Shown here one piece after another: positions 5,751 through 62,552 of a stretch of DNA of 64,000 nucleotides; the stretch's first letter is position 1; each line of letters begins with the position of its first letter. This DNA comes from Macrostomum lignano (Eukaryota), in the NCBI GenBank assembly GCA_002269645.1, contig NIVC01002080.1, positions 1-64,000 on the forward strand, read 5' to 3'. Under the pieces are notes generated by a model. The model was not told where the DNA came from, did no database searches, and saw only the letters and a program-made list of their open reading frames with translations. A program made the position numbers and the translations under genes.

Positions 5751-8077
5751 CTTGTTTGAATATTAATAAAATAAATAAAATAATAATTTTAGACGGATAC
5801 TGTACTTTTGACAAATATTTTGAACTGTTAAAGTCTACTTTATTTAACTTATTGATGTGTTAAATCAGAGAGCATATTTTAATGCCTATTCTGCGACAGA
5901 ATAAGCATCTTACGTTCAAGTGTGCACAGGAGAAACATAGAAAAATCGGCATCCAATGATATTTTCACCAATTCTAAGTCTTGCGTCCTTTCCTACTTTA
6001 GTAGTCCTTGCGCCCGTTGTGTTTGTGTCCCACCCCTCTGGCGCCTGCGTAAGCCGCCCGGTGCCTGATTGGCGGAGGCTCGGGCAGTGTTCCCCCTTCT
6101 CGTCTTGTAGCGCTGTCAACCCCTCCCCAACCTTTTTGCAATGTATCCCCCGGCGCTGGCTTAGCCAGTTGGCTCACTCTGATTGGCTGCGAGTCCGTCT
6201 GTTTGGCAGAACCCCTTTTTATTCCTGCCCTGGCCTGCCTAGAATATTTATATGAGGCCTCAGCGGCCCCTGCTTTCCTCGCGCTCGACCCTTTTCGGTC
6301 AACGCTGCCCCGTTGCGCCTACGTGTCCTGCGGCTGCGATTATAAATAAAGGTGACGCTCTTATTACACCGAAGCCGAGCCGACGACCGGGCCGGGCCGT
6401 TGCCCTTCAGCGAACAACAATGCCCCCGGTTGTTCAGCGAGCAAATCGTGAGCACTCCTACTGTCTGTCTTTTCGGGATTTGCTTGCCTAGAGCTGAGCC
6501 AGGATTAGGAGTGTCGTATGCTGATTCCCACCTCAATCAGCTCAGCGTCATACACCTAGCAAGAGGCCATCGTGTATTGTACGCTCGATCAGCCTGATCT
6601 CAGCCGACTCTGCGACAGCAGCGCTCAAGGAAATAAGAAGTTTCGCTTGGGATTCTTCCCTTGGTTCATCACATTAAGACTAAAGTTGATTGTGATTCTG
6701 AGAGTGAGAGTAAAAGGTCTTGACTTGGAGTCTGATTGAAATACAAGCTCGTAGAGTTAAAATATTAGCTCAAGTAGTAGCTCTAGCAGCAGTGAAGCTG
6801 AATCACAAGCCACTAAGTGCCAGGGTGCTCCATTACGAGTAAAACAGTCAGTTGACATTGTCAGTGCCTTTGGCTTTCAAAAGGAGATTGCGAAACTTGC
6901 AGCCTGCCGGAAGACTTTTGGATCTCAGCCTGGGAATCAGGCCTTTCTCAAGCTTCCAAGAAAAGAAAGTCAGTAAGCCTTTGTTCTAGTGGAATACCAT
7001 CGACAATGATGAGCATACCAACCTACCTATTCTTCTAGAGCTTCGGCTTCAATGAAGCCAACCACACTGAAGGCCTGAACACGGATCGGGTTAATTTGCC
7101 CGAAACACTTTGCTCGGGACTTTCTGCGTCAACGGTTTGGAACAGGTTACCTTAAAGATAAAATAATTAATCCAGACAAGAACTCCAAGCGTCAGAGGCT
7201 GGCGGAGGAGGCAAGTGGAGAAGTAATTGCTGCTTTTGATAATTTCTGGGGCTCCAATTACAGTTGGAACCTGGTCAAGCGGTCATTGAATTAGATGTTC
7301 TCAGACCTTAAATAGTTGATTTACTTATAATCATTTACTTATTTACTTAGAATCATTCAAGTTTCGACTGCTCACAAGTAATTAATCGTTGTCTGTTTGC
7401 GCCACAACACAACAGTTGGGAATTTATTTTATCAGCTAATATGCAGCTTTGGTTAATCTTTAAGACGCTTACCCGGCAAAAAATAATTAGGCTTTGTGAC
7501 CGCACTTCGACCGCAGTTGACCGGATTTCGCGTACCATGCCAAAAAACGGTTCACCTCGACCGTTTTTTGCGGTCAAATTGATGAGGTCAAATTACGTTC
7601 GAAATACGGTCAAAAACGGTCGAATTGCGGTCAGATTCGGTCAAGAAACGGGCCAAAAACGTTCACCTCGACCGTTTTTTGCGGTCAAATTGATGAGGTC
7701 AAATACGGTTGAAATGCGGTAAAAAAAGATCGGATTGCGGTCAGATGCGGTCAAAATGTGGCCCCAATACCATTTGTCACTTGTTCACTTTCCAACAGAT
7801 GTATCCTTGCGCGCGCTACTTTGGTTTGTACCTGCACATTGCGAGACTTATTGTCTGTATGAAAATAAATAAATGAATTGTATTCTGTAACTACGGAAGA
7901 AGCGTTCGTTTGCGCACAGCGACATATTTTGAGAGTTCCTTTTTCTCTTTTCGCTGGAACATAAGACTTATCGTAGGAGAACTATAGGAAAGTACATGGG
8001 CACGTAGGCTATATATAGCTAGAGAATGAGCAGGAGCATGAGATCGACCCGGACATTAAACATTGTTGCAGCTAAAC

Positions 8078-9400
8078 ATGGACGCACTGCCATGCGAGAT
8101 ACTGACGCAGATTTTCGCGGAGCTCGACGTTCAGAGCCTTATGCAATGCGCCTACGTGAATCGCCGCTTCCTGGATGTCGCAATGCAGCCCCTGCTGTGG
8201 CGCCGCTTGCGGCTGGATCCGGCACTTATCGAGGCCGGGGACCCATCCGCATCGGCACTATCATGTCTGAGGGTTTGGCTGGCGGCTACGGTGGAGGAAG
8301 TGGAGTTTGGCTACCTGGATCAACCGAGGGACGCCACGCTGCAGCAGCTGTCGCTCATGCTGCGCGACTGTCGCAACCTCCGGACCTCCTTCTAACGGCG
8401 ATTGATCAAACCGAGTCTGCACCCAACCCACTGGTCGCCGTTGGCCGCGGCTGTCACCGACTCCGTAGACTCCGCCTCCTGGACTGCCGAGATATGCTGA
8501 CAGCCGAGGCTCTGAGGGCCATTGTGGACGGCTGTCCAGGCCTCACCCACGTCGAGATAGACGACGTCGGAGCACTGGCGGACCCCTCTACCTGCGAGCC
8601 AATGTTCCGCAGCCTCCTTTGCCAGCTCTCATCGATACGGCTGGCGTTTGACGGGCGTTGCCGAGTTATTGACGCGGCCTTACAATCGGATTGCGGGATT
8701 TGCTTGCGCGGCCTGGTCGTGGTCGATTTATGTGGCGCTAGTGTTGGTGGGTGTTCAATACTTGCGTAGTTACTTAGTTGTTGCATAGTGATACTTTCTT
8801 GCCCACTAACTTTGTAATACTTACTTGTTTTACCACTCATCCACCCAGTATTTAAGCTGGTACTGAACAAAATACAAATTACAGAACTGCTGGCTGTTGT
8901 TGCCCAGTCTGCGAGAGTTGACAGTGGGCGGTACGGCTATTTCGGATGCACTCGCCGCGCAAATGTCTGCAGCCGTCGGCCGTAACGGCAGCCAGCTGCG
9001 TAATGCAGTCTAGAAAAGTGCGTCCGATTGACTGATCGCGGCCTCCGCTCTTTTCTCGCCGCGTGGCCTAGGCTGAGGAGCCTGACGCTGCTCCAGTGCG
9101 AGAAGCTCCGAGCTGAAGGCCTGCTGGCTACCCGTCAGCCGGAGCTTCGCGAACTGGTAATCCTGGCCAGCTTAGACGCTCCAGCCCGCCTCCACGGCAG
9201 TGTCTCGGGTCGGGCCCGCCAACCACTACCGTCGGCCATACAGCTGCTAACCGTCTCGCCCTGCCGCTTTATTCGCTGCACGGGCGATGATTTCGTGCAC
9301 GCATTGGCCAACTGTCGGGGTGAGTTACTGCAGGCCGCGGAGCTGGAGGATGCCGCTGTCGCGGCCGAGAATGCCGCTGACCCAGTCAATGCTGGCGCTG
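8078..9400 (+). pseudogene. F-box/leucine-rich-repeat (FBXL-like) region inside the transposon, frameshifted
   Basis: MDALPCEILTQIFAELDVQSLMQCAYVNRRFLDVAMQPLLWRRLRL is an F-box. AMN1/FBXL-type LRRs follow (GCHRLRRLRLLDC, GCPGLTHVEI, LEKCVRLTDRGL, WPRLRSLTLLQCEKL). One-nt frameshifts at ~8385 and ~9005; probable intron ~8745-8884. Confidence 0.8.
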
Positions 9401-11931
9401 CCGAGGAGCTCCTGAACGTTCCCTTCCACGCCTCTCTGCCTGTCACCCTGGGCGACGCGGTCTCTGAGATTCAAGTGGGCAGGCGCGACCTTGCATTGTC
9501 GCAGAATGGCGTCCAGCGCCTTCTTGTACCAGACAACGCTTGGCCTCGCACGGTCTATAAACTGACATCGTACACCAATGCGTCCACAAGTGTGTTGGGT
9601 ACGTCCAAGTGCTTCACCATCTGCAGTGCGTGTGCCAGCAATTCGACCGGCTCGTGTCGACCGGGTGATGTGTGCTCCCACTGTGGCAGTACCAACGTCG
9701 GCAACTTCTGGGTGCTCGACGTCAAGAGACAAATTAGGACGCACATCGAATGCGACGGATTGCTTGCGAACGTTACCTTCCCGGTGAATCGCATACCAGT
9801 TCCAGGTTTTACGTCTGTCACAATTATGACAGCATCATTTCGAAATAAGCGAGTATAAGCGAATAATATGGCCGTCAATGCAATCTAAAGCATTCACAAC
9901 GTCCGGCAGACAAGGAGGACGTCTCCTACACCGTCGCCTCGGTCGCTTTCCCCTACCATCGAACCACCCTATCAAGGTGTGTCCCGTGTACCTCAGTATC
10001 ACGGAGGTACATAGCAAGCAGCGGATTCGCTTCGTGATTACCCTTGGCGTCTGGGCGAGTAGAAAAGAGTTGAAGTTTTTTGCCTTCTTGCCAGTCGTTG
10101 TTGACGTTCTCAACGACCTTCGCCACAATGGAGTCGCTTACGTGGACGCCACTGGTCAGCAGAGGGTTCTGCGACTCCACCCGTTAACAGCTATGTTTGA
10201 CGCTCCGGAAAGGGCGGATGCCCTTGTATGCGAAGTCACTCCGCCAAGAAATTGTCTCCCATATGTATTTCGACAAACATACTACGTGCTGACGCTTCTA
10301 AACAGTCTTGGGTCAATCTGTAATTCCAGAATTTTACTATTATTTCGTTCCAACCTCTAAGCTCCACACAGATACGGCTGCGACAGCTGTTACGTAAAGA
10401 CGGCAGCGTTACCGGGAGGCGGTGCCACTATCCCGTCCACCTGTCCACCTCAATGCGGCGTTCTGCGGAGAGGCTTGGGTGTACGCAAACCGACTTGCGC
10501 AATATGCCGGACTCAGTGGCCCTTGCGGAGCGCCGGCGCCTTGAGGGAGCAGCACCCAACACCGACATCCTTGGCATAATGGGTTTGTCTCCACTGGCCC
10601 ACCTGTCCGGCTTTGACTACGTCCGTGGCACCCCTCCGTGCTACCTCCATCAGCTCTGCTTGGGCCTGGTCCGCTGGCACAAGTGGCAATGGTTTCTGCC
10701 ACGCGTCAGGAGACCTGATCCGAACGCCGCGCTGGGTGCGCATATTTTTCATCTCCGACAAGCGGTGGATGAGCGGCTGCGTTGCGTGCGTCTGCCCAGG
10801 TATGTACACCGCGGTCTGCAGCCGCACCTGAATATGCGATAAGACAGTGCAACTCTTTGCTCCTGTCCCAGATCTGTGCAGCGGCAGCGAGTCCGATATG
10901 GGGCTGCTGGCGTATGGGCTCATGGTACTGCATGAATTTCTGCCCGACCGCTACTACCAGCACTTCCTAGTTCTGTCGACCGCCATCTTTTGGCTGACGC
11001 TGGACTCCGGTCTACTGCGACGCGAATTGCCGTTCGTCAGAAATTCGCTGTTGTACTTCATCGCAAAGCTGGCCCAGTTGTATAGCGAACGAGCGATGAC
11101 CTACAACTCACACCAGGTAAGATGGTGAGAAGTTTATATCCAAGCATGCAACTATCACCAGGAAAAAAGGACATGCAGATGTAGCATACGTACAACGCCG
11201 CACGATTTAACGTTCCAATAGGTGTGCCAGCACATGAAGGCCTTCGCGCACTTGGTCGGTCCGCTGCACCACCAGTCAGCCGGCATTTTTGAGACCATGC
11301 ATTGCCGACTCCGCAGGCGGCTGCACGCGTCGCGCCACACAGACCTCGAGGTCTTCAATGTCGTTGAGCGAGACGTGGCAACGCAGCTGACAAAGGTTCG
11401 CAGGACTGCAGCAGCCGAACCGCGCCCAGAAGGCTTCGTCTCGGGCAACACAGATGCGTGTTGTCAACGGCGTTTGTCTTGCGACGGCACCATGGCATGG
11501 CGAACCAGTGGAGCAGTGCGTCGACGCAGTCCGGCCTCTTTATCGAGCGTTGGAATGCAACCAAGTGCATCCCACGCACTGCGTGCTCGAGCTTCGTCGG
11601 CTTCTATGGTGACGGACAGAAGGGTCTGCACTTCGCACGCGTTGAAGCTATCACCCTGTGCCAGTTGGGTGGCATCTGGCTGACGTGCAAGCTCCTGCCC
11701 GTTGCACTGCTTCCCGACCCCTTGGAGGCGTTGAGCAACGTGTCGTCGGCGGATACGGAGCACCGTGGTTGCCGCTGCTGGCATGTTTGCCGCCTGCAGT
11801 GCGACCCTTTCGGCCCTACAGAAGCCCTCGGCAATGCAGTCGATGTCAATCTGACGGACATCTTAGGCGCGTGCGACGTGTCGCCGACGTCGATTGCAAT
11901 GCTACCGCATACCCAGTTGCCCACGTCGTAA
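9400..11931 (+). pseudogene. EnSpm-type (TnpD-like) transposase, multiple frameshifts, probable intron near 11115-11220
   Basis: Motif order typical of animal EnSpm transposases: CxxC..CxxC (CSAC/CSHC), CPVYL, FDAPERA, YGCDSC, GIMGLSPL..FD...YLHQLCLG, VDERL, YYQHF, MTYNSHQ, GPL..SAGIFE. Confidence 0.82.
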
Positions 11932-12149
11932 TTGTAAACTTATTACGCAATAGCCACTGCCCTGTTTGATTCTGTTGTTCCGTTGTTTTCCTCTTTATAG
12001 TTTCAAGCCGTATGTTCAATTATTAATTTGCACTGTTTTCGCTGTGCTTACTCTCCGCTTATAAAGAAGTTATGTTTACCGTTTACCTTTACCGTTAATA
12101 AATTTATTAAAGTGCTACATGCTAACTTTCACAGCTTTTTTCTGAACAA

Positions 12150-13231
12150 TCGGACTAGCGTACTGTGGCCACAATATTTCTGCTACCTCATATTTCCGGG
12201 GCCGGGTAACGACCAGGGAGGAGGCGCTAGCGATCGCAAATCTTAGCCGTCGCGAGGTGTCACAGCCCGAGCTGCCCCGAAGGTGTCCAGCCTGCCGCAA
12301 CCTGCAGCTCGAAGTGTCCCGCGTCCGCGACCTGGCCGACGCCAAAGGTAATTAATAAGTGAACACCCGCTGTCACCTTTCGTTGTTGCAACGTCGATGT
12401 TCGTTTCGTTTCGGTCATTTATTTGTGTCACCTTTTCTGCCACAAGGGCCGAGTTGCAGCGCCGTACGGCCCAGTTGCAGGACGCAGATGCCCGTGCTAA
12501 TGAACTCCAACAACAGGTCGCTTACCTGTTGCGTCGGAGACGGCGCTGGAAGCGCTTCTAGCCGAGGAGCAGCGCCTTCGTGCCCTACAGGAGAAGCGAT
12601 GCGCACAGGCAGTCGCTCACATGCAGCGGGCAGCTTCCTCTTTACAGGCGACCGATGGCCCACAGGATCATGTTGCACCAGGAATCGACATCGATCCTGA
12701 TGCAGATTGCCGATTATCGTTTGAAGCCGAAGCTATGCTGGTCGATAACACTGCTGCCACTGCTAGTGGAGAGGGCCGGAGTGCCAACCGGGTCGCTGTG
12801 CTGCCGCACAGTACGCCAGGTGAGATCTACAAATACTTACAGAGCAATCGTTCTAACTCATCTGACTGACTGGTCACCCTCATCTCTATCCCAAACCAGC
12901 CGAGTCCACCGGCCTTGTCCCTCTGGCAGAGGACATGCCCTATGTCCTGGTAGAAGTAGGTCGGCGCCAGGAGTGCGACCACCGTGAATGCGGCTGAAGT
13001 GGAGAAACTAAACCGGCGCAAAAAAATCGCCAAGTGGGCGCTCGTGCGGACCCTCGCCGGAAGGTCGGCAACAGCCTGAGCACTCCGGCCGACTGCGCAT
13101 CACTTGGTCACATGGAGCGATTCATGCGGAAGATCGGGTGCCCACTGGAGCCACGGGAACTGCAGCGCGCCTTCGCGCGCTGCACGGCAACAGCACGCAG
13201 GCGCCTGGGCGTGCCCCGTAATAAAAGCTAA
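12150..13231 (+). pseudogene. Second transposon gene: CxxC plus coiled coil plus BEN-like C-terminus, spliced and frameshifted
   Basis: Exon-like segments ...RCPACRNLQLEVSRVRDLADAK|GTAATT, AELQRRTAQLQDADARANELQQQV...ALLAEEQRLRALQEK (heptads), and MERFMRKIGCPLEPRELQRAFARCTATARRR, with GT/AG signals at ~12348, ~12447, ~12820 and ~12900. Confidence 0.5.
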
Positions 13232-13252
13232 GACCTCCACCGCTGGTAGCAA

Positions 13253-13415
13253 TACTGGCCATGTCGGCAGCGCCGCTACAGCCTCTGCTGGCCCGTCGAA
13301 CGCCAACTATACTGGCCATGTCGGCAGCGCCGCCACAGCCTCTGCTGGCCCGTCGAACGCCAACTATACTGGCCATGTCGGCAGCGCCGCCACAGCCTCT
13401 GCTAGCCCGTCGAAC
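13253..13415. repeat. 57-bp tandem triplication in the 3' part of the EnSpm element
   Basis: TACTGGCCATGTCGGCAGCGCCGCCACAGCCTCTGCTGGCCCGTCGAACGCCAACTA, about 3 copies. Confidence 0.85.
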
Positions 13416-14853
13416 AGTTATGTGCGTGACATGCACGACTTTGAGGTGGAGCAAGAAGACCTGTTGCACCAGTTCCTAGCTTAATTGTACGTGCGCCCAA
13501 AGTGGCAGTATATTCAGGAGTTAAGTCAGTCTCAAAATTAAAGCACAACCTGAGAATTTTAATAAGCGGTTTATTTTTTCCCGTGCCTCAAAATTCTAGC
13601 AACAGTCAGCCTAGAATTCAATCAAAGCTTCAATCAAATGTCTCCAGACTGACTTTCTCCTGAAAAAAACTGCACCAAAACTGAATGCTTCTGCTTATAA
13701 ACGGCATTTATGCTCGTTTTTCTGTAAACATTGACAGCCAATATTTGTTTTAGTTTTAATTGCTTTCACTCAACTTTTGCAGTTTTCGTTTTTGTTTTAC
13801 ATCTAGCAAATACAGTGAAAGCATATCGGTGCCGTTCTTTGCCGTTCTGCTGTTTTTACCGTTCTTTTCTATCACGGTTTATGATTTAGCTTTTCATGAT
13901 TTATTCATTTGATTAACCAGTTGATTCCTCTTCCACGGATTCCTCATTCATCTTCCTTTAGGGAAAAATGGAGCTCAGTCACAGAGAGACAGAGAGATAT
14001 ACAGTACATCTGGACCACATTCTGACCGCAAAACGATGGACAAATTTGACTGCAATAAATACGCAAAAAATGGAGATTTGCGGTCAAAGGAAAACGAGGT
14101 TTGACCCCAAACGTAACTACCGGCACGTTTTTTTACCGTATTTGTTACTCTTGTGAGATAGGGCCATGCGGTCAAAATTTGCGGTCTAAAAATTTACATA
14201 TTTTTTGCCGGGTAGCCATTAGTTGCTATTTGTTGAATGTTAAACGTTGCTGTAAAAGCGTTCTATTTTTTCATGTTACTTTTAAGACGGCTGCTGTTGA
14301 GATCTGAAACCTGAAGACGGGTGTGTGTCCGTCATAGTTTTTTTATCTGCAGTGATCTTCACACGAGCTTTATATAATACTACAAAGGTTCTAGAATAAA
14401 TTTGCGGAAAAGCCTCACATAACAAATATTTTCACAATAGTTCCCCATATTAAACAGGCAACACTTGTACCATTGGCTTGCTAGCGTCTTTCATTGTGTT
14501 AGTCATTTTTTCTTTAACCATGGGTTTGTGTGACAGCAACTCAAAAAGGCATCGTGAAACTCATCTGATTGCTTAATTACGGACATGCAATTAAGTACAA
14601 TAAATTCAGAATAGTTATTTTTTGTAATTGAACGCTAGATTCAACGGTAGATCAAAGTTAGAGTTAGGGTTCAGCTAGGGGCTTTAAGGCAGGCTTCGAT
14701 GCCAAAGCTCACCTTTCTTTGTTGCCTACCCAACCGGGGTTGGGGGGGGGGGCGCAGATTGCTAGTACAAAGCCACCAAAATTGGCGAAAGTCACTGATT
14801 GACAATGTACAGCCTATAAAATCCTCACTAATCATTGATAGCTGGCAGCTCAC

Positions 14854-15142
14854 CGGAGAAGTCGAATTGGCCATCCAGCAGGAACAGCTGCCTAGCCAGC
14901 TGGTACATCCGTCTCGATTGTCCGCGCGGCTCCCGCCTGGCCGCCACCCGGATGTGGCCCAGATCGCCATAAAACTGGTCGGAATGGCGCGAGAACACCA
15001 GGCCCAGCCGGAGCAGCGGCTCCCAGGACAGCTGCAGGCCGGAGCGCAGGGCCTGGCAGCAGGCCGTCCACAGCTCGGCCGACAGGTAGGGTGTCGATGA
15101 GATGAGGAAGTGCCGCAGGCAGGAACAGCCAAGCCGGCACAC
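14854..15142 (-). CDS. ARFGEF3: ARFGEF3 exon 8
   Basis: VCRLGCSCLRHFLI...LARQLFLLDGQ matches ISRVGCSCIRYVLV...MAQQVFMLDTQ. CAG/GTGAG boundaries, phase 0-1. Confidence 0.88.
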
Positions 15143-15199
15143 CTGGCAATGGGGGTTGGATAATAACTTAATAACTAATAAGTGACTAGCTGTAGCCCC

Positions 15200-15345
15200 A
15201 GGTGGCTCAGCAACTGACACTCTGGGAGTTGGGCCCGCAACTGAGGATCTGGTAGGTAGTGGCCCAGCAACTGAGGATCTGGTAGGTAGTGGCCCAGCAA
15301 CTGACACTCTGGGAGGCTGGCCCAGCAACTGAGGATCTGGGAGGC
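15200..15345. repeat. Short ~30-bp tandem repeat in intron 7
   Basis: GCCCAGCAACTGAGGATCTGGTAGGTAGTG units. Confidence 0.75.
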
Positions 15346-15359
15346 CACATTGTAAGCAC

Positions 15360-16220
15360 CTGCTCAGAGCAGCTGGACACGCAGTCGATGAGCACATGCA
15401 GCAGGCTCTGCACGGCGCCGGACGCGAACTCAGGGCCAGCCTCGCGCAGCAGGTGCACGGCCAGGTCGGTGGTCAGCCCGCAGGCCTGCCGGAGTGCCGT
15501 CACCCGCAAAGGCCGCTCGCAGGCGGCACAGCAGCGCAGACGCTTCAACAGCTGGGGCAGCAGCAGGCGCTGGAAGGCGAACAGCACGGCATCGCAGCCG
15601 GGGCTGGCCAGGCCGGACCGCAGCAGGTCGAAGGCGGCTGTGAACGCCTGGGCAGCGGCTGGCGATTCCCAGGCGGCCGACAGCAGCCCGTCGATAAGCA
15701 GCCACCACACGGCCAGCAGGTCGGAGCTTGGACCGCAGCCTGGCGCCGAAGCGGCTCCGGCCGGCGACTCCGGGCCGTCGGACGGCAAAGCCGGGCAGGC
15801 CACGGGCACAGGCAGGTGCCAGTCGTGCTGCGGGAACCTGCGCACCAGCTGGGCCAGGCTGCGGCCCGGGGAGCCGTCGCTAACGGCGGCGGCGGCGGCG
15901 CTCGACGACGAAGCCGATTCAGCTGACGGAGCAGCGGCGAATCGATCGGCGCCTTTGAAAGCTGGCGGCGCCGGCATGCGCGCCATGTCGCCAAGGAGGC
16001 CGGCAGCCGTGGCCAAGTGGCGCAGGGCTGGCAGGCAGAGCGGCGCGGAGCTGACGGGATCAACTGACGTGCCAGTGGACCTGTTTGAGTCGAACTGTTC
16101 GCCCGTGTCCGAATCGGACTCGCTGTCCGTGTCTTCATCTGCCGCCGGGTCGCCGGCCACGGGGCCGCGGACGTAGCGTAGCAGGCAGAGCACGCAGTCC
16201 ACTAGGGCGTTGGCCAGAAC
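15360..16220 (-). CDS. ARFGEF3: ARFGEF3 exon 7
   Basis: Begins VLANALVDCVLCLLRYVRG (ARFGEF3 VFANAATSYIMCLMKFVKG) and ends LIDCVSSCSEQ. Phase 0-0. Confidence 0.85.
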
Positions 16221-16249
16221 CTGCGTGCGTTGGCGTATTGCATCTGCTA

Positions 16250-16570
16250 TGTTTACCTGTCAATCAGCAGCCCCTCCTATCTTTACCTGTCAATCAGCAG
16301 CTCCTCTTATCTTTACCTGTCAATCAGCAGCCCCTCTTATCTTTACCTGTCAATCAGCAGCCCCGCCCATCTCTACCTGTCAATCAGTAGCCCCACCTAT
16401 CTGTACCTGTCAATCTGTAGCCCCTCCCATCTTTACCTGTCAGTCTGTAGCCCTTCCCATCTTTACCTGTCAGTCTGTAGCCCTTCCCATCTTTACCTGT
16501 CAATCTATAGCCCTTCCCATCTTTACCTGTCCATCAGCAGCCCCTCCAATCTCTACCTGTCAATCAGTAG
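16250..16570. repeat. Minisatellite, 30-bp unit CTTTACCTGTCAATCAGCAGCCCCTCCTAT
   Basis: About 11 tandem copies near the exon 7 acceptor. Confidence 0.9.
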
Positions 16571-16600
16571 ACCTATTTTTACATGAAATCATTTGAAATA

Positions 16601-16879
16601 ATAATAATTGATTACACCTGCCATAATGAGCAGATGTGCAACCGACAGCTCAGCCTAGCTAAAGGCTGCGTACGGCTGTTCAGTCCAAGGACTGGGGGGT
16701 CGCCACACACCCTCAATTACCCCAGCTAATGCTGGCACCCATTTTACAGCTGGGTGAACTGAAGCAATACAGAGTTAAGTGTCTTGCTCAAAAACACAAA
16801 TTGCTCCAAATGGGCTGAGAATCGAACCCCCGACCTTTCAGTAGTGAGTCTGACTCTCTAACCATTAGGCTACAACCCT
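16601..16879 (-). mobile_element. tRNA-derived SINE, copy 1 (ARFGEF3 intron 6)
   Basis: Reverse complement of the 24808-25090 copy; A/B-box head, body and (TTA)n tail. Confidence 0.85.
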
Positions 16880-17032
16880 CTAATTTGGTAAATACTACTA
16901 CTGTAGTAAACACAGGTCTCACCTGTTCATCATTAGCAATATACAACCTCCTCTCCATCATTAGCCACATAAAACCCGTGTCACCTGTCCGTCACTAGCT
17001 ACAACCCCTCACCCCGTCAATCAGCAGCCTAC

Positions 17033-17823
17033 CTGGGTAGAATCTGTGCCAAGAAAGGCCTGAAACACGTCGCTAACAGCGGCCGCGTGCCGCTCCCCAG
17101 CAGCGGAGCCGGCAAAATCGACGCGCACGTGACGAAGCGCGGCAAACACGGGCCGCCAGCCGCTGCCCAATTCGTGGCTAAACGCTTCAACCAGTTCGCA
17201 CACGCAGCAGACCAGCTGATCCTGAGTGTCTGCATCGCACAGCTCCAAGCCTAGCAGCCATTCCACTGGCTTCAAAGCGGCCTCGTGCATGTTGAAATGC
17301 GGCCGCTCCGGTCGCCAGCGCAGCAGAGCCACAGTGCATTCGTGCAAACTGCTGACGGCCGTCTTAGCCGTGCGCTGCTCCGAGCAGGCCTTGGTGAAAT
17401 GGCCGCCAGCGATGGACCAGACGCACAGCACGTGAGCGAGCAGCCGCTCAGACTGGGTCACGCTAAGCACCAGCTGGCAGAGCCGGCTGACCAGCCCGCT
17501 GTCGCCGCAGCTCACCAGATCGGCCGACACGTCGCACAGGGCGCGAACAAAAGCTAATAAAGATACCAGAGGAAGCTGGGCCGCGTCATCAAATAGGCGA
17601 TCAGCTGCCGAGACCAGAGCGGCTACAACTTTGGTTGTCTGGGCGGGCGTTAGTAGGCTGTGCCCGCCGACTTGCCAGCGAGCGACAAGGGCGGGAATGT
17701 CCGAGCCGGCTAGCTGACTGTCCGATACGGAATCTGATGTTGACGTGGCCAATAGGCCGCCCATAGACTGGAATTGGCCGCTGCTGACCAGCTGGCGCTC
17801 CAGTGCCGCGATGTGGGTCACGC
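17033..17823 (-). CDS. ARFGEF3: ARFGEF3 exon 6
   Basis: ERPHFNMHEAALKPVEWLLGLELCDADTQDQLVCCVCELVEAFSHELGSGWRPVFAAL matches the BIG-family C-terminal HEAT region. Phase 1-0. Confidence 0.9.
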
Positions 17824-17847
17824 CTGAGCAATGGGATGAACAGCGGG

Positions 17848-18420
17848 CCGATTTTGACATGCTTTTTGAAGGCCGAGTTTGACATGCTTTTTGAAGGCCG
17901 ATTTTGACATGCTTTTTGAAGGCCGAGTTTGATAATGCTTTTTGAAGGCCGATTTTGACATGCTTTTTGAAGGCCGAGTTTGATAATGCTTTCTGAAGGC
18001 CGATTTGATATGCTTTTTGAAGGCCGATTTGATATGCTTTATAAAGGCCGATTTGATATGCTTTTTGAAGGCCGAGTTTGACATGCATTTTGAAGGCCGA
18101 GTTTTATAATGCTTTCTGAAGGCCGATTTGATATGCTTAATGAAGGCTGATTTGATATGCTTTTTGAAGGCCGATTTGATATGCTTTTTGAAGGCCGAGT
18201 TTTATAATGCTTTCTGAAGGCTGATTTGATATGCTTTTTGAAGGCCGATTTGATATGCTTTATAAAGGCCGATTTGATATGCTTTTTGAAGGCCGATTTT
18301 GACATGCATTTTGAAGGCCGAGTTTGATAATGCTTTCTGAAGGCTGATTTGATATGCTTTTTGAAGGCTGATTTGATATGCTTTTTGAAGGCCGATTTTG
18401 AAATGCTTTTTGAAGTTTGA
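17848..18420. repeat. Minisatellite, 24-25-bp unit GGCCGATTTGATATGCTTTTTGAA
   Basis: Tandem array beginning ~20 nt from the exon 6 acceptor. Confidence 0.9.
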
Positions 18421-18604
18421 TTTAGAAAATTCGAAGGCCGACTTTAGAATGAATTTTTAGTATAATACTAGCAATCTTCGCCCCCCGTTGGGGGACATCT
18501 GTATAGAACCTCTGTTCTCTACAAGTAACAAAAAGATAGCCAAAAAAGGCCTTCACAAAAAAAAACAGACAAAATACTCAAAGGAAGCAAAAAGAAATCA
18601 TCCC

Positions 18605-19040
18605 AAGACAGCAAGCATCCCCCAGATAGCAAGCATCTTCCAGATTACAAGCAACCCCCAGATAGCAAGCATCCCCCAGATAGCAAGCATCCCCCAGATA
18701 GCAAGCATCCCCCAGATAGCAAGCATCCGCCAGATAGCAAGCATCTTCCAGATAGCAAGCATCCGCCAGATAGCAAGCATCTTCCAGATTACAAGCAACC
18801 CCCAGATAGCAAGCATCCCCAGATAGCAAGCATCCCCAGATAGCAAGCATCCCCCAGATAGCAAGCATCCCCCAGATAGCAAGCATCCGCCAGATAGCAG
18901 GCATCTTCCAGATTACAAGCAACCCCCAGATAGCAAGCATCCCCCAGATAGCAAGCATCCCCCAGATAGCAAGCATCCGCCAGATAGCAAGCATCCCCTA
19001 CATAGATAGCATCCCCAAATAGCAAGCATCCACCAGACAA
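18605..19040. repeat. 18-bp minisatellite CAGATAGCAAGCATCCCC (inside Helitron-like copy 1)
   Basis: Tandem array; inverted counterpart at ~39165-40160. Confidence 0.9.
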
Positions 19041-19119
19041 TAAGTAGCTAGTGCGATAATTTCCTTAGCATTATAGTGGCTCCTTTAAAATTCGCTTACT
19101 TTTATGTTTGAAATTGTGT

Positions 19120-21510
19120 AAATTTTATGTTTGACATGGTGGCTGTTTTAAGTTCTACATGGCAACTGTTTTATGTTTGAAACGATGGCTTTTTAATGTC
19201 AGACATGGTGGCTCTTTTATGTTTGACATGGTGCCTCTTTATTGTTTGACATGGTGGCTCTTTAATGTTTAACCTGGTGGCTCTTTTATGTTTGAAACAG
19301 TGGCTCTTTTATGTTTGACACAGTGACTCTTTAATGTTCGACAAAGTGGCTATTTAATGTTTGACAAGGTGGCTTTTAAATGTTTGACATGGTGGCTCCT
19401 TAATGTTCGAGAAAGTGGCTCTTTAATGTTTTTCATGGTATAGCTCTTTTATGTTCGACATGGTGGCTCTTTTAGGTTTGACATGGTGGCTCTTTTATGT
19501 TCGACATGGTGGCTCTTTTAGGTTTGACATGGTGGCTCTTTTAGGTTTGACATGGTGGCTCTTAAATGTTTGACATGGTGGCTCTTAAATGTTTGACATG
19601 GTGACTCTTTAATGTTTCAAATGGTGGCTCTTTAATGTTTTACGTGGTGGCTCTTAAATGTTTGACATGGTGGCTCTTAAATGTTTGACATGGTAGCTCT
19701 TTAATATTCTACATTGTGGCTCTTAAGTGTTCGAAATTGTGGATCTTTTAGGTTTGACATGATGGCTGTTTAATGTTCAACATAGTGGCTCTTTTATGTT
19801 TAACATGGTGGCTCTTAAATGTTTGACATGGTGGCTCTTTAATGTTCGAAATGGTGGCTCTTTTGTTTTACATGGTGGCTCTTTAATGTTTGACATGGTG
19901 GCTCTTTAATGTTTGACATAAAGTCACTTATATGTTCGAAATGGTGGCTCTTTTAGGTTTGACATGGTGGCTCTTTTAGGTTTAACATGGTGGCTCTTTT
20001 AGGTTTAACATGGTGGCTCTTTTAGGTTTAACATGGTGGCTCTTTTAGGTTTAACATGGTGGCTCTTAAATGTTCGACATGGTGGCTCTTTAATGTTCGA
20101 CATGGTGGCTCTTTAATATTCTTCATGTTATAGCTCTTTCATGTTTGACATGGTGGCTCTTTTATGGTCGACATGGTGGCTCTTTAATGTTCGAAATGGT
20201 GGCTCTTTAATGTTCGAAATAGTGGCTCTTTCATTTTCGACATGGTGGCTCTTTATGTTTGACATGTTGGCTCTTTTATGATTGACATGTTGGCTCTTTT
20301 ATGTTTGACATGGTGGATATTTAATGTTCGAAATAGTGGCTCTTTTATGGTCGACATGGTGGCTCTTTAATGTTCGAAATGGTGGCTCTTTAATGTTCGA
20401 AATAGTGGCTCTTTTATTTTCGACATGGTGGCTCTTTTAGGTTTGACATGGTGGCTCTTTTATGTTCGACATGGTGGCTCTTTAATGTTTGACATGGTGG
20501 CTCTTTAATGTTTTACATGGTAGCTCTGTTATGTCCGAAATGGTGGCTCTTTAATGTTTGACATAAAGTCACATATATGTTTGACATGGTGGCTCTTAAA
20601 TGTTTGACATGGTGGCTCTTTATGTTTGACATGTTGGCTCTTTTATGTTCGAAATGGTGGCTCTTTTTTGTTCTACATGTTAACTCTTTTTATTTGATAC
20701 GGTGGCTTTTTTAATGTCTGACATGTTGGCTCTTTAATGTTCGACAAAGTGGCTCCTAAATGTTTGACATAGTGGCTCTTCAATGTTTGACAATGTAACT
20801 TTTGAATGTTTGACATGGTGGCTCTTTAATGTTTGACATGGTAGCTCTGTTATGTTCGACATGGTGGCTCTTCTAGGTTTGACAATGTGGCTCTTTAATG
20901 TTTCACATGGTGGCTCTTTAATGTTTTACATGGTGGCTCTTTTATGTTTAACTTGGTAGCTCTTTGTTATTTTACATGGCAGCTCTTTTATGTTCGACAT
21001 GGTGGCTCTTTAATATTCTTCATGTTATAGCTCTTTCATGTTTGACATGGTGGCTCTTTAATGTTCGAAATGGTGGCTCTTTAATGTTTAACACAAAGTC
21101 ACATATATGTTTGACATGGTGGCTCTTAAATGTTTGACATGGTGGCTCTTTATGTTTGACATGTTGGCTCTTTTATGTTTGACATGTTGGCTCTTTTATG
21201 TTTGACATGGTGGCTCTTTAATGTTCGAAAAAGTGGCTCCTAAATGTTTGACATAGTGGCTCTTTGATGTTCGAAATAGTGACTCTTTTATTTTCGACAT
21301 GGTGGCTCTTTAATTTTCGAAATGGTGGCTGTTTAATGTTAGAAATGGTGGCTCTTTTATGTTTGACATAAAGTCACTTATATGTTTTATATGGTGCCTC
21401 TTAAATATTAGACATGGTGGCTCGTTTAGGTTTGACATGGTGGCTCTTTAATATTCGATATGTTAGCTCTTTTATGTTCGACATGGTGACTCTTCTATGT
21501 TTGACATTGC
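19120..21510. repeat. ~21-bp minisatellite TTTGACATGGTGGCTCTTTAATG (inside Helitron-like copy 1)
   Basis: On the order of 100 diverged units; inverted counterpart at ~37590-39120. Confidence 0.92.
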
Positions 21511-22279
21511 GCTTCTTTTATGTTTAGAAGTTTTGTGTTTTTAAGGTGTTTTAATAAAAAAAAATCTTTTTTGCCCTACTAAGATTCGAACCCAAGTCGC
21601 TACATTAGCATTCCAGTCTGTTCGCATCTGGGCTATCTTTTTCAATTGGAGAACATAAATTGTGGCCCTTATAATTCAATTCTTACAGCAAGTCAATTGG
21701 AGTAAAAAGTTATGACATAATCAATTTCTCAGTCAGCCAGAATCAGTCTCAATTTAAGTTGCCAATATGGTTACGCAATTTCATTCAAGTCGTGTGTGCA
21801 TTTCTTCGGCACTGTTTTCAACTTGTTGTGATGCAATCTTTGTCAGAATCAGAATTCAGTCAGTCAGTTTTTTCTCTAGCATTCTTACAATGCATTTCAG
21901 GTCGAAAGAGCTGCTTGACCTTTGCAAAAAAGCATGTTTTTCGAATATTTAATCCCTTTAAAATTGAGCAATTTCTTAGCCAAGATGCATGTACCGTCCC
22001 AGGAAAATTTCTGATCGAATGGTGCAAGTTTGAAGAAAATCGGTTAAGCCGTTTTTTCTGAAATCTATCTCACAGAGACACACATTTCATTTTTAGTATA
22101 TAGGAAATTAGGTAGGTCTATTTTAGGATTCTTTTTATAATATTATTTTTTAATAATTTTTAAAGACGATTTCTAAATATTAAAGAATGAGTTTTACGTT
22201 AAATACAGGGCGATTTCTAGGAAAGCAAAAAATTCAAAATCAGAAGACTTAAAAGAGCTCTCTAAGAAGCTGCTCTCAC

Positions 22280-23029
22280 CTCGAAGCACGTGCGGCCAAC
22301 AGTCGGGAGCCCGCTGTCCGACTCGGACAGCCCGTCCGGTTAGCAGGTCGAGCGACAAAGCGGCGCACGCGTGCAGCCGAAGCGGCGTCCCAGCCGGGCA
22401 GTGACAGGAGGCGGCGGCCAGGCGGCTGAACACGGCGCCGCAGCGGGCCTCCAGTCCGAGGCGGCCAGCCAGCAGAGCGGCAATCTGCAGGCCGGTGACG
22501 GATCTGACAACAGCCTGCCTGGCGTCCTCTAGCACAGCGTCTGTGCCGAACAGTACGGCTAGAGGAGCGCCGCGCTCGCCGCGTTCGACTGTGCCGCCGA
22601 GAACGACGACAACGGCGTCCCAGCTGGCCAGCAGCAGCCAGTGCGCCCACAGCTCCTGCGGCTCTCTGGTCCGGCGCCATTCGCCGCTAGCCGAACTGGG
22701 CGTCTCCGCGCCTAATTGAGCCAGGTTGCTAAGCAATATAGAGTCCTTAGCAACGGCAGCTGGGAAGGTCAAGATTCGTTGATCGGCTACTAGGCGATAG
22801 ATCTCGCGCAGCCAGGCTCTCGAGGTGCACAGCAGCAGGCCGGAGTCCAGCACGCTAGACAGGAAAGCGGCCTCGGTGATTCGGGGGGCTCGAACCAGGC
22901 CCTGCGCCACCGCAGCCAGGCGGAGGGTCCACAGAGATGCAAAGTACACCGCGTCCGCGTTTAGAGACCCGGCGCCGCCGGAGCTGTCTGGCTGGTCTTC
23001 AATTGTGATTAAAGGGAATGGGGAGGCGG
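22280..23029 (-). CDS. ARFGEF3: ARFGEF3 exon 5
   Basis: LNADAVYFASL, SRAWLREIYRLV and APDCWPHVLR match ARFGEF3 (MNADSLYTAA, SQAWIEELYHQV, NPDCWPHVFR). TAG/GTGAG boundaries, phase 1-1. Confidence 0.88.
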
Positions 23030-32748: not shown

Positions 32749-33597
32749 TTAATTCAACAGTAGTCGTTTAACAAAAACCCCGGCCGCTTCGGCCAAAAAG
32801 TCGGCCAAAGGCATCGGACTCTGCAGCGCCGCTAATTGTTGCTGCCTAGACGAAGCCAATGCCGACCGACCGCCAGTGCTTCTAGAAGAAGAATTCGCCG
32901 CTGGCGCCGGCGGCTTAGCATTAGCCAAGGCTTCCCTCAGCGAATACGGCGACAGACTGTCCATTCGATCGAACAAACTAGCGCCGCCGCCAATCTCGTC
33001 GGGTGCGATGGCGGCATCCAGCAGCTGCAGCAGGCAGGCGCAAGCTGCCCGATTATTACTGCCGGGCTTCAAGCAGCCGGCCACAACTTCGGCATCGGCG
33101 TACAGAGCTACACAATCGGCCATGTAAGCTTTGAAAGCCAGCACGGACATCACAGCCGAATAGAATCTGCCAAATTGTACAGCCGCCTGCGGTCGAAGGC
33201 GCAGCCGTTGAAGCAGCACACCGGAGCCGCCAGGCGGAGCGTCACGCAGCAGCAGTTCCATCAGCTGAGTAAAGTGCAAGCCGCATACGGCGTATTGTCT
33301 GCATTCGTCGCGTTGCATTTGGCGCAAACAATCGAAGGCCTCTTTTACTGAGAACAGAAAGCCGGGACTCTGCCAGTTGGCCTGGGTCAGGCTATTCTTG
33401 GCCTGCTCCAAGTCGGCTGGCCGGCCCTCCGTGCTGGCAAAGAATTCGGCAAGGTAAGCCAATGGGTCGGCCGGCTGTTGGGCGCCTAACCGACCGAGGG
33501 CCTCCTTAACCAGGCCTGGCACTCCGTGGCGAGTCAGGAAGGCTTTGTCAGATTCGCCACCACTTGGCGGAGGTGGCAACTGCTGCTGCTCAGACAT
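32749..33597 (-). CDS. TPGS1: Tubulin polyglutamylase complex subunit 1-like, single exon, 282 aa
   Basis: ESDKAFLTRHGVPGLVKEALGRLGAQQPADPLAYLAEFF is the RIIa/Dpy-30-like N-terminus of TPGS1 ([39 protein letters not shown]). C-terminal PMPLADFLAEAAGVFVKRL also matches. Confidence 0.85.
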   Translation of the reverse strand: MSEQQQLPPPPSGGESDKAFLTRHGVPGLVKEALGRLGAQQPADPLAYLAEFFASTEGRPADLEQAKNSLTQANWQSPGFLFSVKEAFDCLRQMQRDECRQYAVCGLHFTQLMELLLRDAPPGGSGVLLQRLRLRPQAAVQFGRFYSAVMSVLAFKAYMADCVALYADAEVVAGCLKPGSNNRAACACLLQLLDAAIAPDEIGGGASLFDRMDSLSPYSLREALANAKPPAPAANSSSRSTGGRSALASSRQQQLAALQSPMPLADFLAEAAGVFVKRLLLN

Positions 33598-36973: not shown

Positions 36974-39900
36974 TCCCATATACTAAAAATGAGTTGTCTA
37001 TATCTATCTATCTAGCTATGCGATAGATTTTAGAAAAAATGGCTCAACCGATTTTCTTCAAACTTGCACCATTCAATCAGAAATTTTCCTAGGACAGTAC
37101 ATGCATCTTGGCTAAGAAATTGCTCAATGTTAAAGGGATTAAATATTTGAAAAACCTTTAAACTTTTTTCCTTTTTCAAATAAAAACCTTTTTCAAATAA
37201 AAATATTTGAAAAATAATTGTAAAAATGCAAGAGAAAAAACTGACTAACTGAATTTCAATTGTGATAAAGATTGCATCACAACAAAATGAAAACAGTGTC
37301 GAAAAAATGCATACAAGACTTGAGTGTAATTGCATACCCATATTGCTAACTTGAATTGAGACTGATACTGGCTGACTGAGAAATTGATTATGTCATAACT
37401 TTTTACTCTAACCGACTTGCTATAAGAATTGATTTATAAGGGCCATAATTCATGTTCTCCAATTGAAAACAGATAGCCTAGATGCGAACAGACTGGAATG
37501 CTAATGTAGTGACCTGGGTTCGAATCTTAGTAGTCCAAAATAATTTTTTTATTAAAACACTTGAAAACACAAATGCTAAACATAAAAAAGCACAATGTCA
37601 AACATAGAAGAGCCACCATGTTAAACATTAAAGAGCCACTGTGTCAAAAATAAAAGAGCCACCATGTGACACATAAAAGAGCCACCATGTCAAACATAAA
37701 ATAGCCACCATGCCAAACAAAAAAGAGCCACCATGTTGAACATCAAAGAGCCACCATACCAAAAATGAAAGAGCCACCATGTCAAACATAAAAGGGCCAC
37801 CATATCGAACATTAAAGAGCCACCATGCCAAACATAAAAGAGCCACTATTTCGAACATTAAAGAGCCACCATATAAGACATAAAAGAGCAACCATGTCAA
37901 ACATAAAAGAGCCACCATGTCAAACATATACGTGACTCCATGTCAAACATTTACATGACTCCATGTCAAACATAAAAGAGCCACCATGAAGAACATTAAA
38001 GAGCCACCATGTCAACATTTAAGAGCCACCATGTAAAACATATACGTGACTCCATGACAAACATATATGTGACTCCATTTCAAACATTAAAGAGCCACCA
38101 TGTCAAACATTAAAGAGCCACTATGTCAAACATAAAAAAGCCACTATTTCAAACATAAAACCGCCACCATGTCAAACATGTATGTGACTCCATGCCAAAC
38201 ATTAAAGAGCCACCATGTCAAACATAAAAGAGCCACCACGAAGAACATTAAAGAGCCACTTTGTCGAACATTAGAGAGCCACCATGTCAAACATATTAGA
38301 ACCACCATGTCAGACATTCAAAAGCCACCATATCAACATTAAAGAGCCACCATGTTGAACATTAAAGAGCCACAATATCAAACATTAAAGAGCCAGCATG
38401 TCGAACATTAAAGAGCCACCATGTAAAACATTAAATTGCCACTATGTCAAACATTAAAAGAGTCACCATGTCAAACATTTAGGAGTCACCATGTCAAACA
38501 TTTAGGAGTCACCATGTCAAACACAACATGACTCCATGTCAAACATTAAAGAGCCACCATATCAAATATTAAAAAGCCACCATGTCAAACATAAGAGAGC
38601 CACTATATAAAACATATATGTGACTTTATGTCAAACATAAAGGAGCCACCATGTCGAACTTTTAAAAGCCACCATGTCAAACATTAAACATAAAAGAGAC
38701 ACCATGCCACACATAAGGGAGCCACCATGTCCAACATATACGTGACTCCATGTCAAACATAAAAGAGCCACCATGTCAAACATTAAAGAGCCAGCATGTC
38801 GAACATTAAAGAGCCATCATGTCAGACATAAAAGAGCCACTATGTCGAACATTAAAGAGCCATCATGTCAAACACAAAAAAGCCACCATGTCAAACATAG
38901 AAGAGCCACCAAATAAAACATTAAAGAACCACCATGTTGAACATTAAAGAGCCATCATGTAAGACATAAAAAAGCCATCATGTGAAACATATATGTGACT
39001 CCATGTCAAACATTAAATAGCCATCTTGTTGAACACAAAAAAGCCACCATGTCAAACATTTATGAGCCACCATTTCAAACATAAAAGAGACACCGTTTCA
39101 AACATAAAAAGAAGTGTCATGCCAAACAAAATGGAGCCACTATAAAGCTAAGGATATTGTTGCACTAGCTACTTGTTTTCTGGTGGATGCTTGCTATTTA
39201 AGGATGGATACTTGCTATCAGGGAGATGCTTGCTATTGGAAGGATGCTTGCTACTGGGGTAACTTGCTATTGGGAGATGCTTGCTCTTGGGGGGGGGGGC
39301 TGGAGGGTACTTGCTATCTGAGAGGGGGTTGCTAGATATCTATAAGGTCTCTTTGTATCCAGGTTATGCTTGCTATCTGGGGTTTCTTGCGGTCTGGGGG
39401 ATGCTTGCTATTGCAGGATGCTTGCTATCTGGGGGATGCTTACTATCTGGGGTCTGGGGGAATACTTGCTATCTGGGGATGCTTGCTATCTGGGGTTGTT
39501 TGCTATCGGGGGGATGCTTACTATCTAGGGTTGCTTGCTATTGAGAGTTGCTTGCTATCTAGGGTTGCTTGCTATTGAGAGTTGCTTGCTATCAGGGGGA
39601 TGCTTGCTATTTGGGGGATGCTTGCTATTTGGGGGATGCTTGCTATCTGGGGTTTCTTGCGGTCTGGGGGATGCTTGCTATCGCGGGATGCTTGCTATCT
39701 GGGGGATGCTTACTATCTGGGGTCTGGGGGAATACTTGCTATCTGGGGATGCTTGCTATCTGGGGTTGCTTGCTATTGGGGGGATGCTTACTATCTAGGG
39801 TTGCTTGCTATCGAGGGTTGCTTGCTATCGAGGGTTGCTTGCTATCGGGGGGATGCTTGCTATCTGCGGGATGCTTGCTATCTGGGGGATGCTTACTATC

Positions 39901-40290
39901 TGGGGTCTGGGGGAATGCTTGCTATCTGGGGATGCTTGCTATCTGGGGATGCTTGCTATCTGGGGTTGCTTGCTATCGGGGGGATGCTTACTATCTAGGG
40001 TTGCTTGCTATCAAGGGTTGCTTGCTATCTAGGGTTGCTTGCTATCGAGGGTTGCTTGCTATCGGGGGGATGCTTGCTATCTGGGGGATGCTTGCAGTCT
40101 GGGGGATTCTTGCTATTTGGGGATCGATGCTTGAATGCTGTCTGAGGATGCTTGCTGTCTTGGGATGTTTTGTTTTTAGAGGGAATATCTTTAATTTTTT
40201 ATGAAGGCTTTATTTCGCTGTCTGTTTGTTTTTTATAAAGAACAAGGATTCTATCCAGATGTCCCCCATCGGGGGCAAAGATTGCTAGTA
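36974..40290 (-). mobile_element. Helitron/Helentron-like minisatellite-carrying element, copy 2
   Basis: Reverse complement of copy 1, with the same termini, the same two arrays and the same unique tail. Confidence 0.7.

Positions 40291-62107: not shown

Positions 62108-62552
<445 letters not shown>

Follow-up and report, generated by a model that had tools for sequence, protein, structure and literature searches.

The window analysed here is a stretch of 64,000 nucleotides of Macrostomum lignano DNA (contig NIVC01002080.1, positions 1 to 64,000 of the forward strand), and the subject is a mobile element of 6.7 kb at positions 7470-14214. Three gene remnants, all on the plus strand, lie between its terminal inverted repeats (TIRs): an FBXL-type gene, in which an F-box is followed by leucine-rich repeats (LRRs), a transposase of the CMC (CACTA/EnSpm-Mirage-Chapaev) or EnSpm type, and an accessory gene. 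An earlier note on this DNA had placed the element at 8078-11931 and had suggested that its family encodes a chimera of F-box, LRRs and transposase or, alternatively, co-transcribes a captured FBXL gene. The TIRs extend the element in both directions and bring the third, accessory gene remnant into it. Two related elements, L001 on a Tara Oceans contig and L008 in M. lignano, serve for comparison. The features of the window element are, in order:

7470-7483, plus strand: 5′ TIR TACCCGGCAAAAAA with the core CCCGGCAAAAAAT, homologous to the termini of L001 and L008
7484-7770, plus strand: 5′ subterminal repeat region with GCGGTCAAA and CGGTCGAA motifs and two direct repeats of ~110 nt
7771-8077, plus strand: AT-rich spacer (41% GC) that precedes the F-box ATG and contains a TATATATA motif at ~8013-8020
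8078-8745, plus strand: FBXL exon 1, encoding the F-box and then the first cysteine-containing LRRs
8746-8884, plus strand: FBXL intron, 37% GC amid exons of 61-62% GC, ending in ...TTACAG
8885-9319, plus strand: FBXL exon 2 (LRRs), ending with ...ANCRG in phase 1, the same phase and end as in the L008 homologue
9320-9333, plus strand: GTGAGTTACTGCAG, consisting of the conserved donor GTGAGT of FBXL intron 2 and a few further bases; breakpoint, read in frame
9334-11931, plus strand: pseudogene of a CMC/EnSpm-type DDE transposase, by BLAST homology to the transposase P0001
11126-11221, plus strand: transposase intron, after ...TYNSHQV
12241-13231, plus strand: accessory gene remnant, encoding a coiled coil and then a C-terminal domain that ends ...PRELQRAFARCTATARRR, by homology to open reading frame (ORF) 3 of L001
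13252-13422, plus strand: tandem repeat of 57 nt in three copies (98% identity), inside the element just 3′ of the accessory gene remnant
14018-14200, no strand assigned: 3′ subterminal repeat region with GCGGTCAAA motifs in both orientations
14201-14214, minus strand: 3′ TIR, perfect reverse complement of 7470-7483

The perfect TIRs that had been reported around the F-box and the transposase were recovered as a 14-nt pair (TACCCGGCAAAAAA), whose arms reach 35 nt at 80% complementarity. Repeats of the GCGGTCAAA type are present in the subterminal regions of both ends, with 11 matches against 1.4 expected, a number that none of 100 shuffled sequences reached. Within the element the predicted exons have a GC content of 56-62% and the predicted introns and spacers one of 37-42%; the spacer between the 5′ repeats and the F-box ATG may serve as a promoter. 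For a comparison of termini the end regions of the three elements were used (window 7460-7483 and 14201-14224, L001 87-129 and 10011-10053, L008 9043-9066 and 22893-22916). They read (TA)CCCGGCAAAAAAT in the window, CCCGCTGAAAAAAT in L001 and CCCGATTGAAAAT in L008, and have the common form CCCG(N2-3)(G)AAAAAT, not the CA...TG that is usual for CMC elements. The dinucleotide TA stands on both sides of the CCCGG core in the window element only, either as a target-site duplication (TSD) of 2 bp or as a part of the TIR; the 3-bp flanks of this element differ (GCT vs GCC), and the flanks of L001 (AT/CC) and L008 (AG/TC) show no duplication. Readings of the ends as piggyBac-like (TTAA) or as generating a TA duplication were rejected, as L001 and L008 give no support to them.

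The ATG at 8078 indeed opens an F-box, which occupies positions 8081-8215 (residues 7-51 of ORF 8063-8395) and matches the Pfam model F-box-like (PF12937) with an E-value of 5.9e-13 and a score of 48.8 bits against a cutoff of 24.3, as well as F-box (PF00646) with E 6.7e-06. The FBXL-type LRRs described downstream of it were found again when the interrupted frames were stitched together: in a phmmer search of the PDB the stitched protein aligned over the F-box and five LRR stretches to FBXL2 (6o60_C, E 1.8e-12), with further matches to FBXL17 (E 1.6e-4) and SKP2 (E 0.008). The Pfam run proposed in the earlier note thus bore out the F-box, while the stitched FBXL stayed below threshold with the LRR models and the transposase did not match Transposase_21. 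An AlphaFold single-sequence model of the stitched FBXL was uninformative (pLDDT 38).

The FBXL of the window is not an intact gene, with two frameshifts in its coding sequence and the last exon missing. A 1-nt deletion at ~8386 leads to a stop at 8393-8395 in the F-box frame, and a second frameshift of 1 nt follows at ~9005, where the stop 9007-9009 bounds ORF 9028-9858 on its 5′ side. The coding sequence finishes with ...HALANCRG at 9319, directly followed by GTGAGT, and the last LRR exon and the stop codon of the L008 homologue have no counterpart anywhere in the window. Neither homologues nor a host parent gene were found with the stitched FBXL protein by a word-index search, a method that is insensitive to a decayed copy, and a metagenome scan with the FBXL alignment (A1) gave pattern matches of which none was confirmed. 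Exact-protein look-ups of the window ORFs 8026-8769, 32749-33597 and 53195-54466 had no match on record.

The transposase remnant is homologous to P0001 from position 9403 (residue 108 of P0001) to 11928, its stop codon lies at 11929-11931, and AATAAA/ATTAAA signals follow at 12097 and 12106. A search with the stitched transposase among 1.84 billion representative proteins yielded 1318 homologues, with P0001 as the best (4.3e-119) and M. lignano and JGI metagenome proteins as the next-best matches. A word-index search with the same sequence, insensitive for a decayed copy, found only P0001, and the pattern matches of a metagenome scan with the transposase alignment (A2) were not confirmed in any case. 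The remnant reads in frames 1/0/2/1/2/1, which requires at least four frameshifts not explicable by introns, and it has neither a start codon nor the first ~107 codons of its relatives. The first catalytic D is replaced (DVSYTVASVAF vs DLSYSICSDGF in P0001). The motifs DAPERADAL (D2), RYGCDSCY (C(2)C), NSHQVCQHM (H(4)H) and GIFE (E) follow in the same order as in P0001-P0005. A loss of the catalytic E in the lineage (PPCYLHQ for P[DE]YMH) was considered and rejected, since in the CMC motif definition the E comes after H(3-4)H, where it is present (LFE/IFE). The intron at 11126-11221 shares its position with the M. lignano gene of locus L003 (between residues 683 and 684 of P0151), and the transposase of the closest relative, L001, is intronless.

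Transposase_21 (PF02992) was matched neither by fragments of the window transposase, nor by the stitched sequence of 617 aa, nor by the closest relatives P0001-P0007. More distant homologues (P0009, P0013 and P0014, E 1e-21 to 1e-19) match this model above the gathering score. Assignment of the window transposase to CMC/EnSpm, as proposed in the earlier note, is therefore reasonable given the homology of the catalytic domain and the Transposase_21 matches of the more distant homologues, with membership inferred through transitive homology only; the termini, which begin with CCCG and not with CA or CACTA, and a TSD that could not be verified do not agree with its classical form.

The accessory gene remnant is frameshifted at ~12530 and ~13060. 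Its C-terminus (...STPADCASLGHMERFMRKIGCPLEPRELQRAFARC...) matches ORF3 of L001 (tblastn, E 0.002), and by shared motifs the remnant corresponds to the genes located after the transposase in L003 (P0155), L005 and L008. An accessory gene downstream of the transposase is thus common to the window, L001 (8575-9342), L003, L005 (5097-6365) and L008, and represents the helper-type gene of the family. The C-terminal domain shows the pattern 'L..LF..EEL..S..G[RK]...' and gives weak but concordant BEN signals, namely Pfam BEN with E 0.019 and, as the sole PDB match of a profile of four sequences, BEND6 with E 0.47. To judge from these signals, the accessory protein may act as a helper of the BEN type that binds DNA at the subterminal repeats. 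In Pfam and the PDB no similarity of the accessory gene pointed to TnpA; a direct sequence comparison with TnpA was not made.

P0001 is encoded by an intact gene of 863 aa in L001, which is a complete TIR-bounded element of 9.9 kb with 33-nt TIRs starting with CCCGCTGAAAAAAT, subterminal arrays and two further ORFs besides the transposase. The intact relatives (P0001-P0005 and the P0151 cluster) begin with a Met of their own; after it comes an N-terminal region of 110-250 aa, first basic and then acidic, that is absent from the window transposase. They have no F-box. Similarity to the FBXL protein was found in none of the 161 relatives fetched, and none of the ten relatives scanned with Pfam contained an F-box. 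L003 and the cluster P0151-P0161, which make up the M. lignano Mlig001703 family, comprise at least five near-identical (at least 90%) copies of transposase plus accessory gene that have intact frames and are spread over different M. lignano contigs; these copies point to a sister family that lacks the FBXL and has been active recently. In older gene models the transposase is fused with the accessory gene or carries an unrelated N-terminus of up to 1805 aa.

When the fetched loci were searched with the FBXL protein of the window (tblastn), a match was obtained at the locus of the transposase P0004 (E 1e-17 and 3e-16). The extended locus, L008 (NIVC01002297.1:73966-97554), had been selected via its transposase and not via an FBXL. 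It contains a complete element of 13.85 kb at L008:9053-22906, which corresponds to NIVC01002297.1:83018-96871, with the following features (positions in L008):

9053: start of the 5′ TIR CCCGATTGAAAATC, perfect over 14 nt, with the reverse complement ending at 22906
9068-9270: GTCGGCACT arrays, with inverted arrays at 22369-22875
10001-13589: transposase
13843-13956: stray transposase fragment of 34 aa, just after the transposase stop
~15226-17371: FBXL gene (Pfam F-box-like, 4.5e-11)
19106-21312: accessory gene

The stitched FBXL proteins of the window and L008 are collinear, with 34% identity over 379 aa (E 2e-40). The window intron 8746-8884 has its equivalent in the L008 homologue, before the 'L..LTV' repeat, and exon 2 ends at the same position and in phase 1 in both genes ('TGT CGG G|GTGAGT' in the window vs 'TGT CGT G|GTGAGT' in L008). 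Beyond this CRG boundary the L008 gene continues with an intron of 165 nt, an LRR exon of ~160 aa and a stop codon of its own. It stands as a gene of its own between the transposase, whose stop lies 1.6 kb upstream, and the accessory gene. An F-box region limited to the window copy, as a one-off insertion would leave it, is thus not what was found, and the alternative offered in the earlier note, a captured FBXL gene resident in the element, gains support from this second TIR-bounded M. lignano element with an FBXL homologue. The presence of a single-copy host FBXL by chance in a locus selected via its transposase is very unlikely (~1e-4, estimated by comparing the sizes of locus and genome). 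At L002:16245 a TIR-like match of 11-12 nt was considered as the 3′ end of this element and rejected in favour of the 500-nt subterminal array and the perfect 14-nt TIR at L008:22906.

The frame that seemed to fuse the two genes, ORF 9028-9858, is TTG-defined and has 276 codons. As described in the earlier note, it contains the last LRRs (CVRLTDRGL and WPRLRSLTLLQCEKL) followed by the transposase N-terminus (ELLNVPFHASLP...PRTVYKL...CSAC...CSHC...VLDVKRQI), with neither a stop nor a Met between them. The F-box ATG does not serve as its start, because the 1-nt frameshifts at ~8386 and ~9005 and the intron 8746-8884 intervene; overall the frame from the F-box to the DDE domain is interrupted at 8393, 9007, 9856 and repeatedly afterwards. 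At its other end the ORF has its stop codon at 9856-9858 and does not reach the DDE core. A word-index search with the junction ORF (9028-9855) found no homologue, the method being insensitive. The window FBXL is cut ~14 nt into its second intron (9320-9333) and joined there to the acidic linker of the transposase. As the FBXL coding sequence ends exactly at the conserved phase-1 boundary 'CRG|GTGAGT', the 14 nt that are read through are intron sequence at a breakpoint, and the apparent fusion frame is an intron read-through across a deletion or rearrangement breakpoint. This ORF is not a working fusion, because two frameshifts separate it from the F-box ATG, because it closes upstream of the DDE core and because the transposase is broken in several places; the joint frame should neither be annotated as a fusion protein nor be used as evidence for one. 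What had been observed in the earlier note is therefore largely real, its fusion reading is unsupported, and its reading as a resident captured FBXL gene is supported.

Taken together, the window element is probably a dead, internally rearranged copy of a CMC-type element whose lineage carries an FBXL-type passenger gene, with the chimeric ORF as an accident of the breakpoint. Intact elements of the lineage would encode a coiled-coil accessory protein and a DDE transposase that has a start codon of its own and, in at least two sub-lineages, would also contain a separate, intron-containing FBXL2-like gene that points the same way. In the window copy, FBXL intron 2 (9320-9333) would have been joined to the acidic linker by an internal deletion or rearrangement, with the transposase-side breakpoint ~85-107 codons into the transposase. 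The two genes would have come to lie in one frame by chance, giving the 276-codon ORF, and a non-autonomous, mutationally dead copy would have resulted. The best-supported conclusion is that the FBXL-type gene is a recurrent passenger of the transposon lineage, present in at least two sub-lineages, that of the window and that of L008, each represented by one FBXL-bearing copy. We lean towards inheritance of the FBXL within the lineage rather than two independent captures, because the window and L008 elements share the FBXL subfamily, the intron positions and the orientation, and because the divergence of the FBXL proteins (34-38%) is about that of the transposases (30-38%).

Several observations weigh against this interpretation. 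A convincing TSD was not found at the ends of the window element, L001 or L008. No FBXL is present in six further related loci (L001, L003, L004, L005, L006 and L007), and among these L001 is the closest transposase relative of the window. The gene lies upstream of the transposase in the window and downstream of it in L008, so that either one of the two orders, if not both, is derived or each element captured the gene independently. Both FBXL copies are frameshifted; in L008 the frameshifts may be assembly errors. Furthermore, an 11-nt match to the 3′ TIR (TTTCAATCGGG) at L008:18245-18255, ~870 nt past the FBXL stop and without a subterminal array, permits an alternative parsing of this locus. 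This match and the stray transposase fragment could mean that the element was rearranged internally or that its FBXL-bearing segment arose by nesting or in tandem.

In the window the FBXL takes the place of the transposase 5′ end, as filler or captured DNA commonly does in non-autonomous elements. This replacement, the differing positions in the two elements and the absence from the six relatives speak for independent captures of the Pack type (transduplication), which we regard as unlikely, though the strongest of the competing explanations. Gap repair after excision would have copied a fragment of a host FBXL, running from the promoter through exon 1, the intron and exon 2 into the start of intron 2, over the 5′ region of the window element; the L008 gene would have been acquired separately, and the passenger would have no role for the transposon. 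Indeed, the captured piece is genomic, as it has an intron, it ends arbitrarily inside an intron, and the stray transposase fragment next to the L008 FBXL shows that rearrangement took place inside that element. Against this, two captures in the same orientation would have to involve one FBXL subfamily (34% identity, E 2e-40, with intron positions in common), the similar divergence of FBXL and transposase is as predicted by co-inheritance, the L008 FBXL is a complete gene with a stop codon and not a fragment, and no host parent gene turned up in the protein search, insensitive as it is.

It is highly improbable that the family encodes a single F-box-LRR-transposase polypeptide, with the frameshifts as later decay of a fusion gene. 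Such a chimera is favoured by the frame, which runs on from the LRRs to the transposase with no intervening stop or ATG, and by the position of both modules on the same strand inside one TIR pair. The junction, however, coincides with a conserved FBXL splice donor, the last FBXL exon is missing, and so are 107 or more N-terminal residues found in all intact relatives, which begin with a Met of their own. No FBXL similarity (0/161 fetched relatives) and no F-box (0/10 scanned with Pfam) occur among the relatives, and in L008, the sole relative that has both genes, these are separate and in the opposite order. A stop after the LRRs and a separate transposase start, either of which the earlier note had named as speaking against its chimera, are present in relatives. 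Equally doubtful is a host FBXL gene or pseudogene that lies between transposon fragments and belongs to no element: the genome is repeat-rich, with many minisatellites, and no TSD confirms a single insertion, but the two ends share the 14-nt TIR and the subterminal motif in correct inversion and enclose transposase and accessory remnants in the canonical order, the FBXL is as decayed as the transposon genes, and its homologue lies inside a second complete TIR-bounded element that was found via the transposase, for which the chance estimate given above applies.

Outside the element the window consists of eukaryotic, minisatellite-rich DNA, and the element appears to lie between host genes. The following features were assigned:

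14671-18088, minus strand: exon with a Sec7/BIG/Mon2-like HDS domain (E 4.6e-7)
32749-33597, minus strand: TPGS1-like ORF with a Dpy-30 motif (1.5e-17)
53195-54466, plus strand: ORF with a trematode PH-like domain (PH_trem, 6.3e-8)
62540-63454, minus strand: HCO3- transporter exon (2.3e-82)

Two minisatellite blocks at 18602-21525 and 37578-40122 are reverse complements of each other in mirrored order: an array of the 18-mer CCCCAGATAGCAAGCATC followed by an array of the 23-mer CTTTTATGTTTGACATGGTGGCT (x105) is mirrored by arrays of AAACATAAAAGAGCCACCATGTC and then ATGCTTGCTATCTGGGGG. Complementarity is ~80% over arms of up to 496 nt, which are separated by ~16 kb with several ORFs and the TPGS1-like gene. 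These blocks could derive from an inverted duplication on a large scale or mark the two ends of a very large element.

F-box proteins bind SKP1 to form SCF E3 ligases, in which the LRRs choose the substrate. By analogy with them we infer that an intact transposon FBXL would act as an SCF substrate adaptor, its F-box binding the host SKP1 and its LRRs selecting the target. A further step, that a maintained third gene hijacks the host SKP1-CUL1 machinery, either for degrading a PIWI/piRNA or chromatin silencing component or for controlling the turnover of the transposase, would be speculative, and we consider it improbable. To our knowledge, recurrent passenger genes are rare in animal DNA transposons, and the occurrence of members of the same F-box/LRR family in two diverged TIR-bounded elements of one lineage is new here. 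Transgenesis and RNAi are possible in M. lignano, so that a transposon-borne ubiquitin-ligase adaptor is testable there against PIWI-pathway phenotypes. The importance of the finding hinges on the existence of intact, multi-copy elements that bear an FBXL.

EnSpm elements typically encode a TnpD transposase and a TnpA-like helper. The window lineage resembles CMC elements in the order of its catalytic motifs, in the Transposase_21 matches of its distant homologues, in the short TIRs combined with subterminal arrays and in the helper gene downstream of the transposase. It differs from them in its CCCG termini (CA or CACTA in CMC elements), in that no TSD of 2-5 bp could be verified, in its closest relatives remaining below the Transposase_21 thresholds, in the extra F-box/LRR gene and in a helper that is a coiled-coil protein, possibly BEN-like, without detected similarity to TnpA. 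The passenger itself is comparable to proteins of the FBXL2/FBXL20 type, which have an N-terminal F-box followed by cysteine-containing LRRs (L..L.L..C..LTD.GL), and FBXL2 is its best match among solved structures. The identity is low, however, the window gene is frameshifted and lacks its last exon, and no orthology to a specific host FBXL was established.

Passengers suspected of countering host control include the ULP-type proteases of plant elements. Pack-MULE, Pack-CACTA and Helitron captures in plants (PMC8903248, PMC13317346) resemble the window element in that a host-like gene with an intron lies between the TIRs of a DNA transposon, in a non-autonomous copy with a chimeric read-through ORF at the junction. 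In contrast to these, the host here is an animal, a flatworm, and the passenger is a nearly whole gene, which in L008 is even whole and stands beside an apparently intact transposase. Furthermore, the same gene family is present in two diverged elements, which is not predicted by one-off captures. A closer parallel in this respect is found in fungi, where DNA transposons, EnSpm-like ones included, carry TET/JBP dioxygenase passengers with a patchy spread and a proposed anti-silencing role (PMC12730594). Both systems have a recurrent passenger gene of host type that is patchily distributed among related families; the fungal passenger is a DNA-modifying enzyme known from many families and copies, whereas the flatworm one is a ubiquitin-ligase adaptor in two elements.

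Combinations of an F-box with transposon sequence are also known from host genes, such as F-box::Mariner-HTH in Caenorhabditis and F-box::CxC7 of KDZ elements in zebrafish (PMC12062965). These share with the window the presence of an F-box and transposase-derived sequence in one frame and the location of F-box families in transposon-rich DNA. They are, however, expressed and selected host genes that have gained a transposon domain, while in M. lignano an F-box gene lies inside a mobile element and the joint frame is a dead deletion product. The analogy behind the anti-silencing idea comes from viruses: the polerovirus protein P0, the F-box protein of another selfish element, binds SKP1 and removes the silencing effector AGO1 (PMC6593998). 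P0 has a minimal F-box-like motif without LRRs and no homology to the flatworm gene. If the hijacking reading were true, the FBXL of these elements would be the counterpart, in a cellular transposon, of the viral F-box silencing suppressors.

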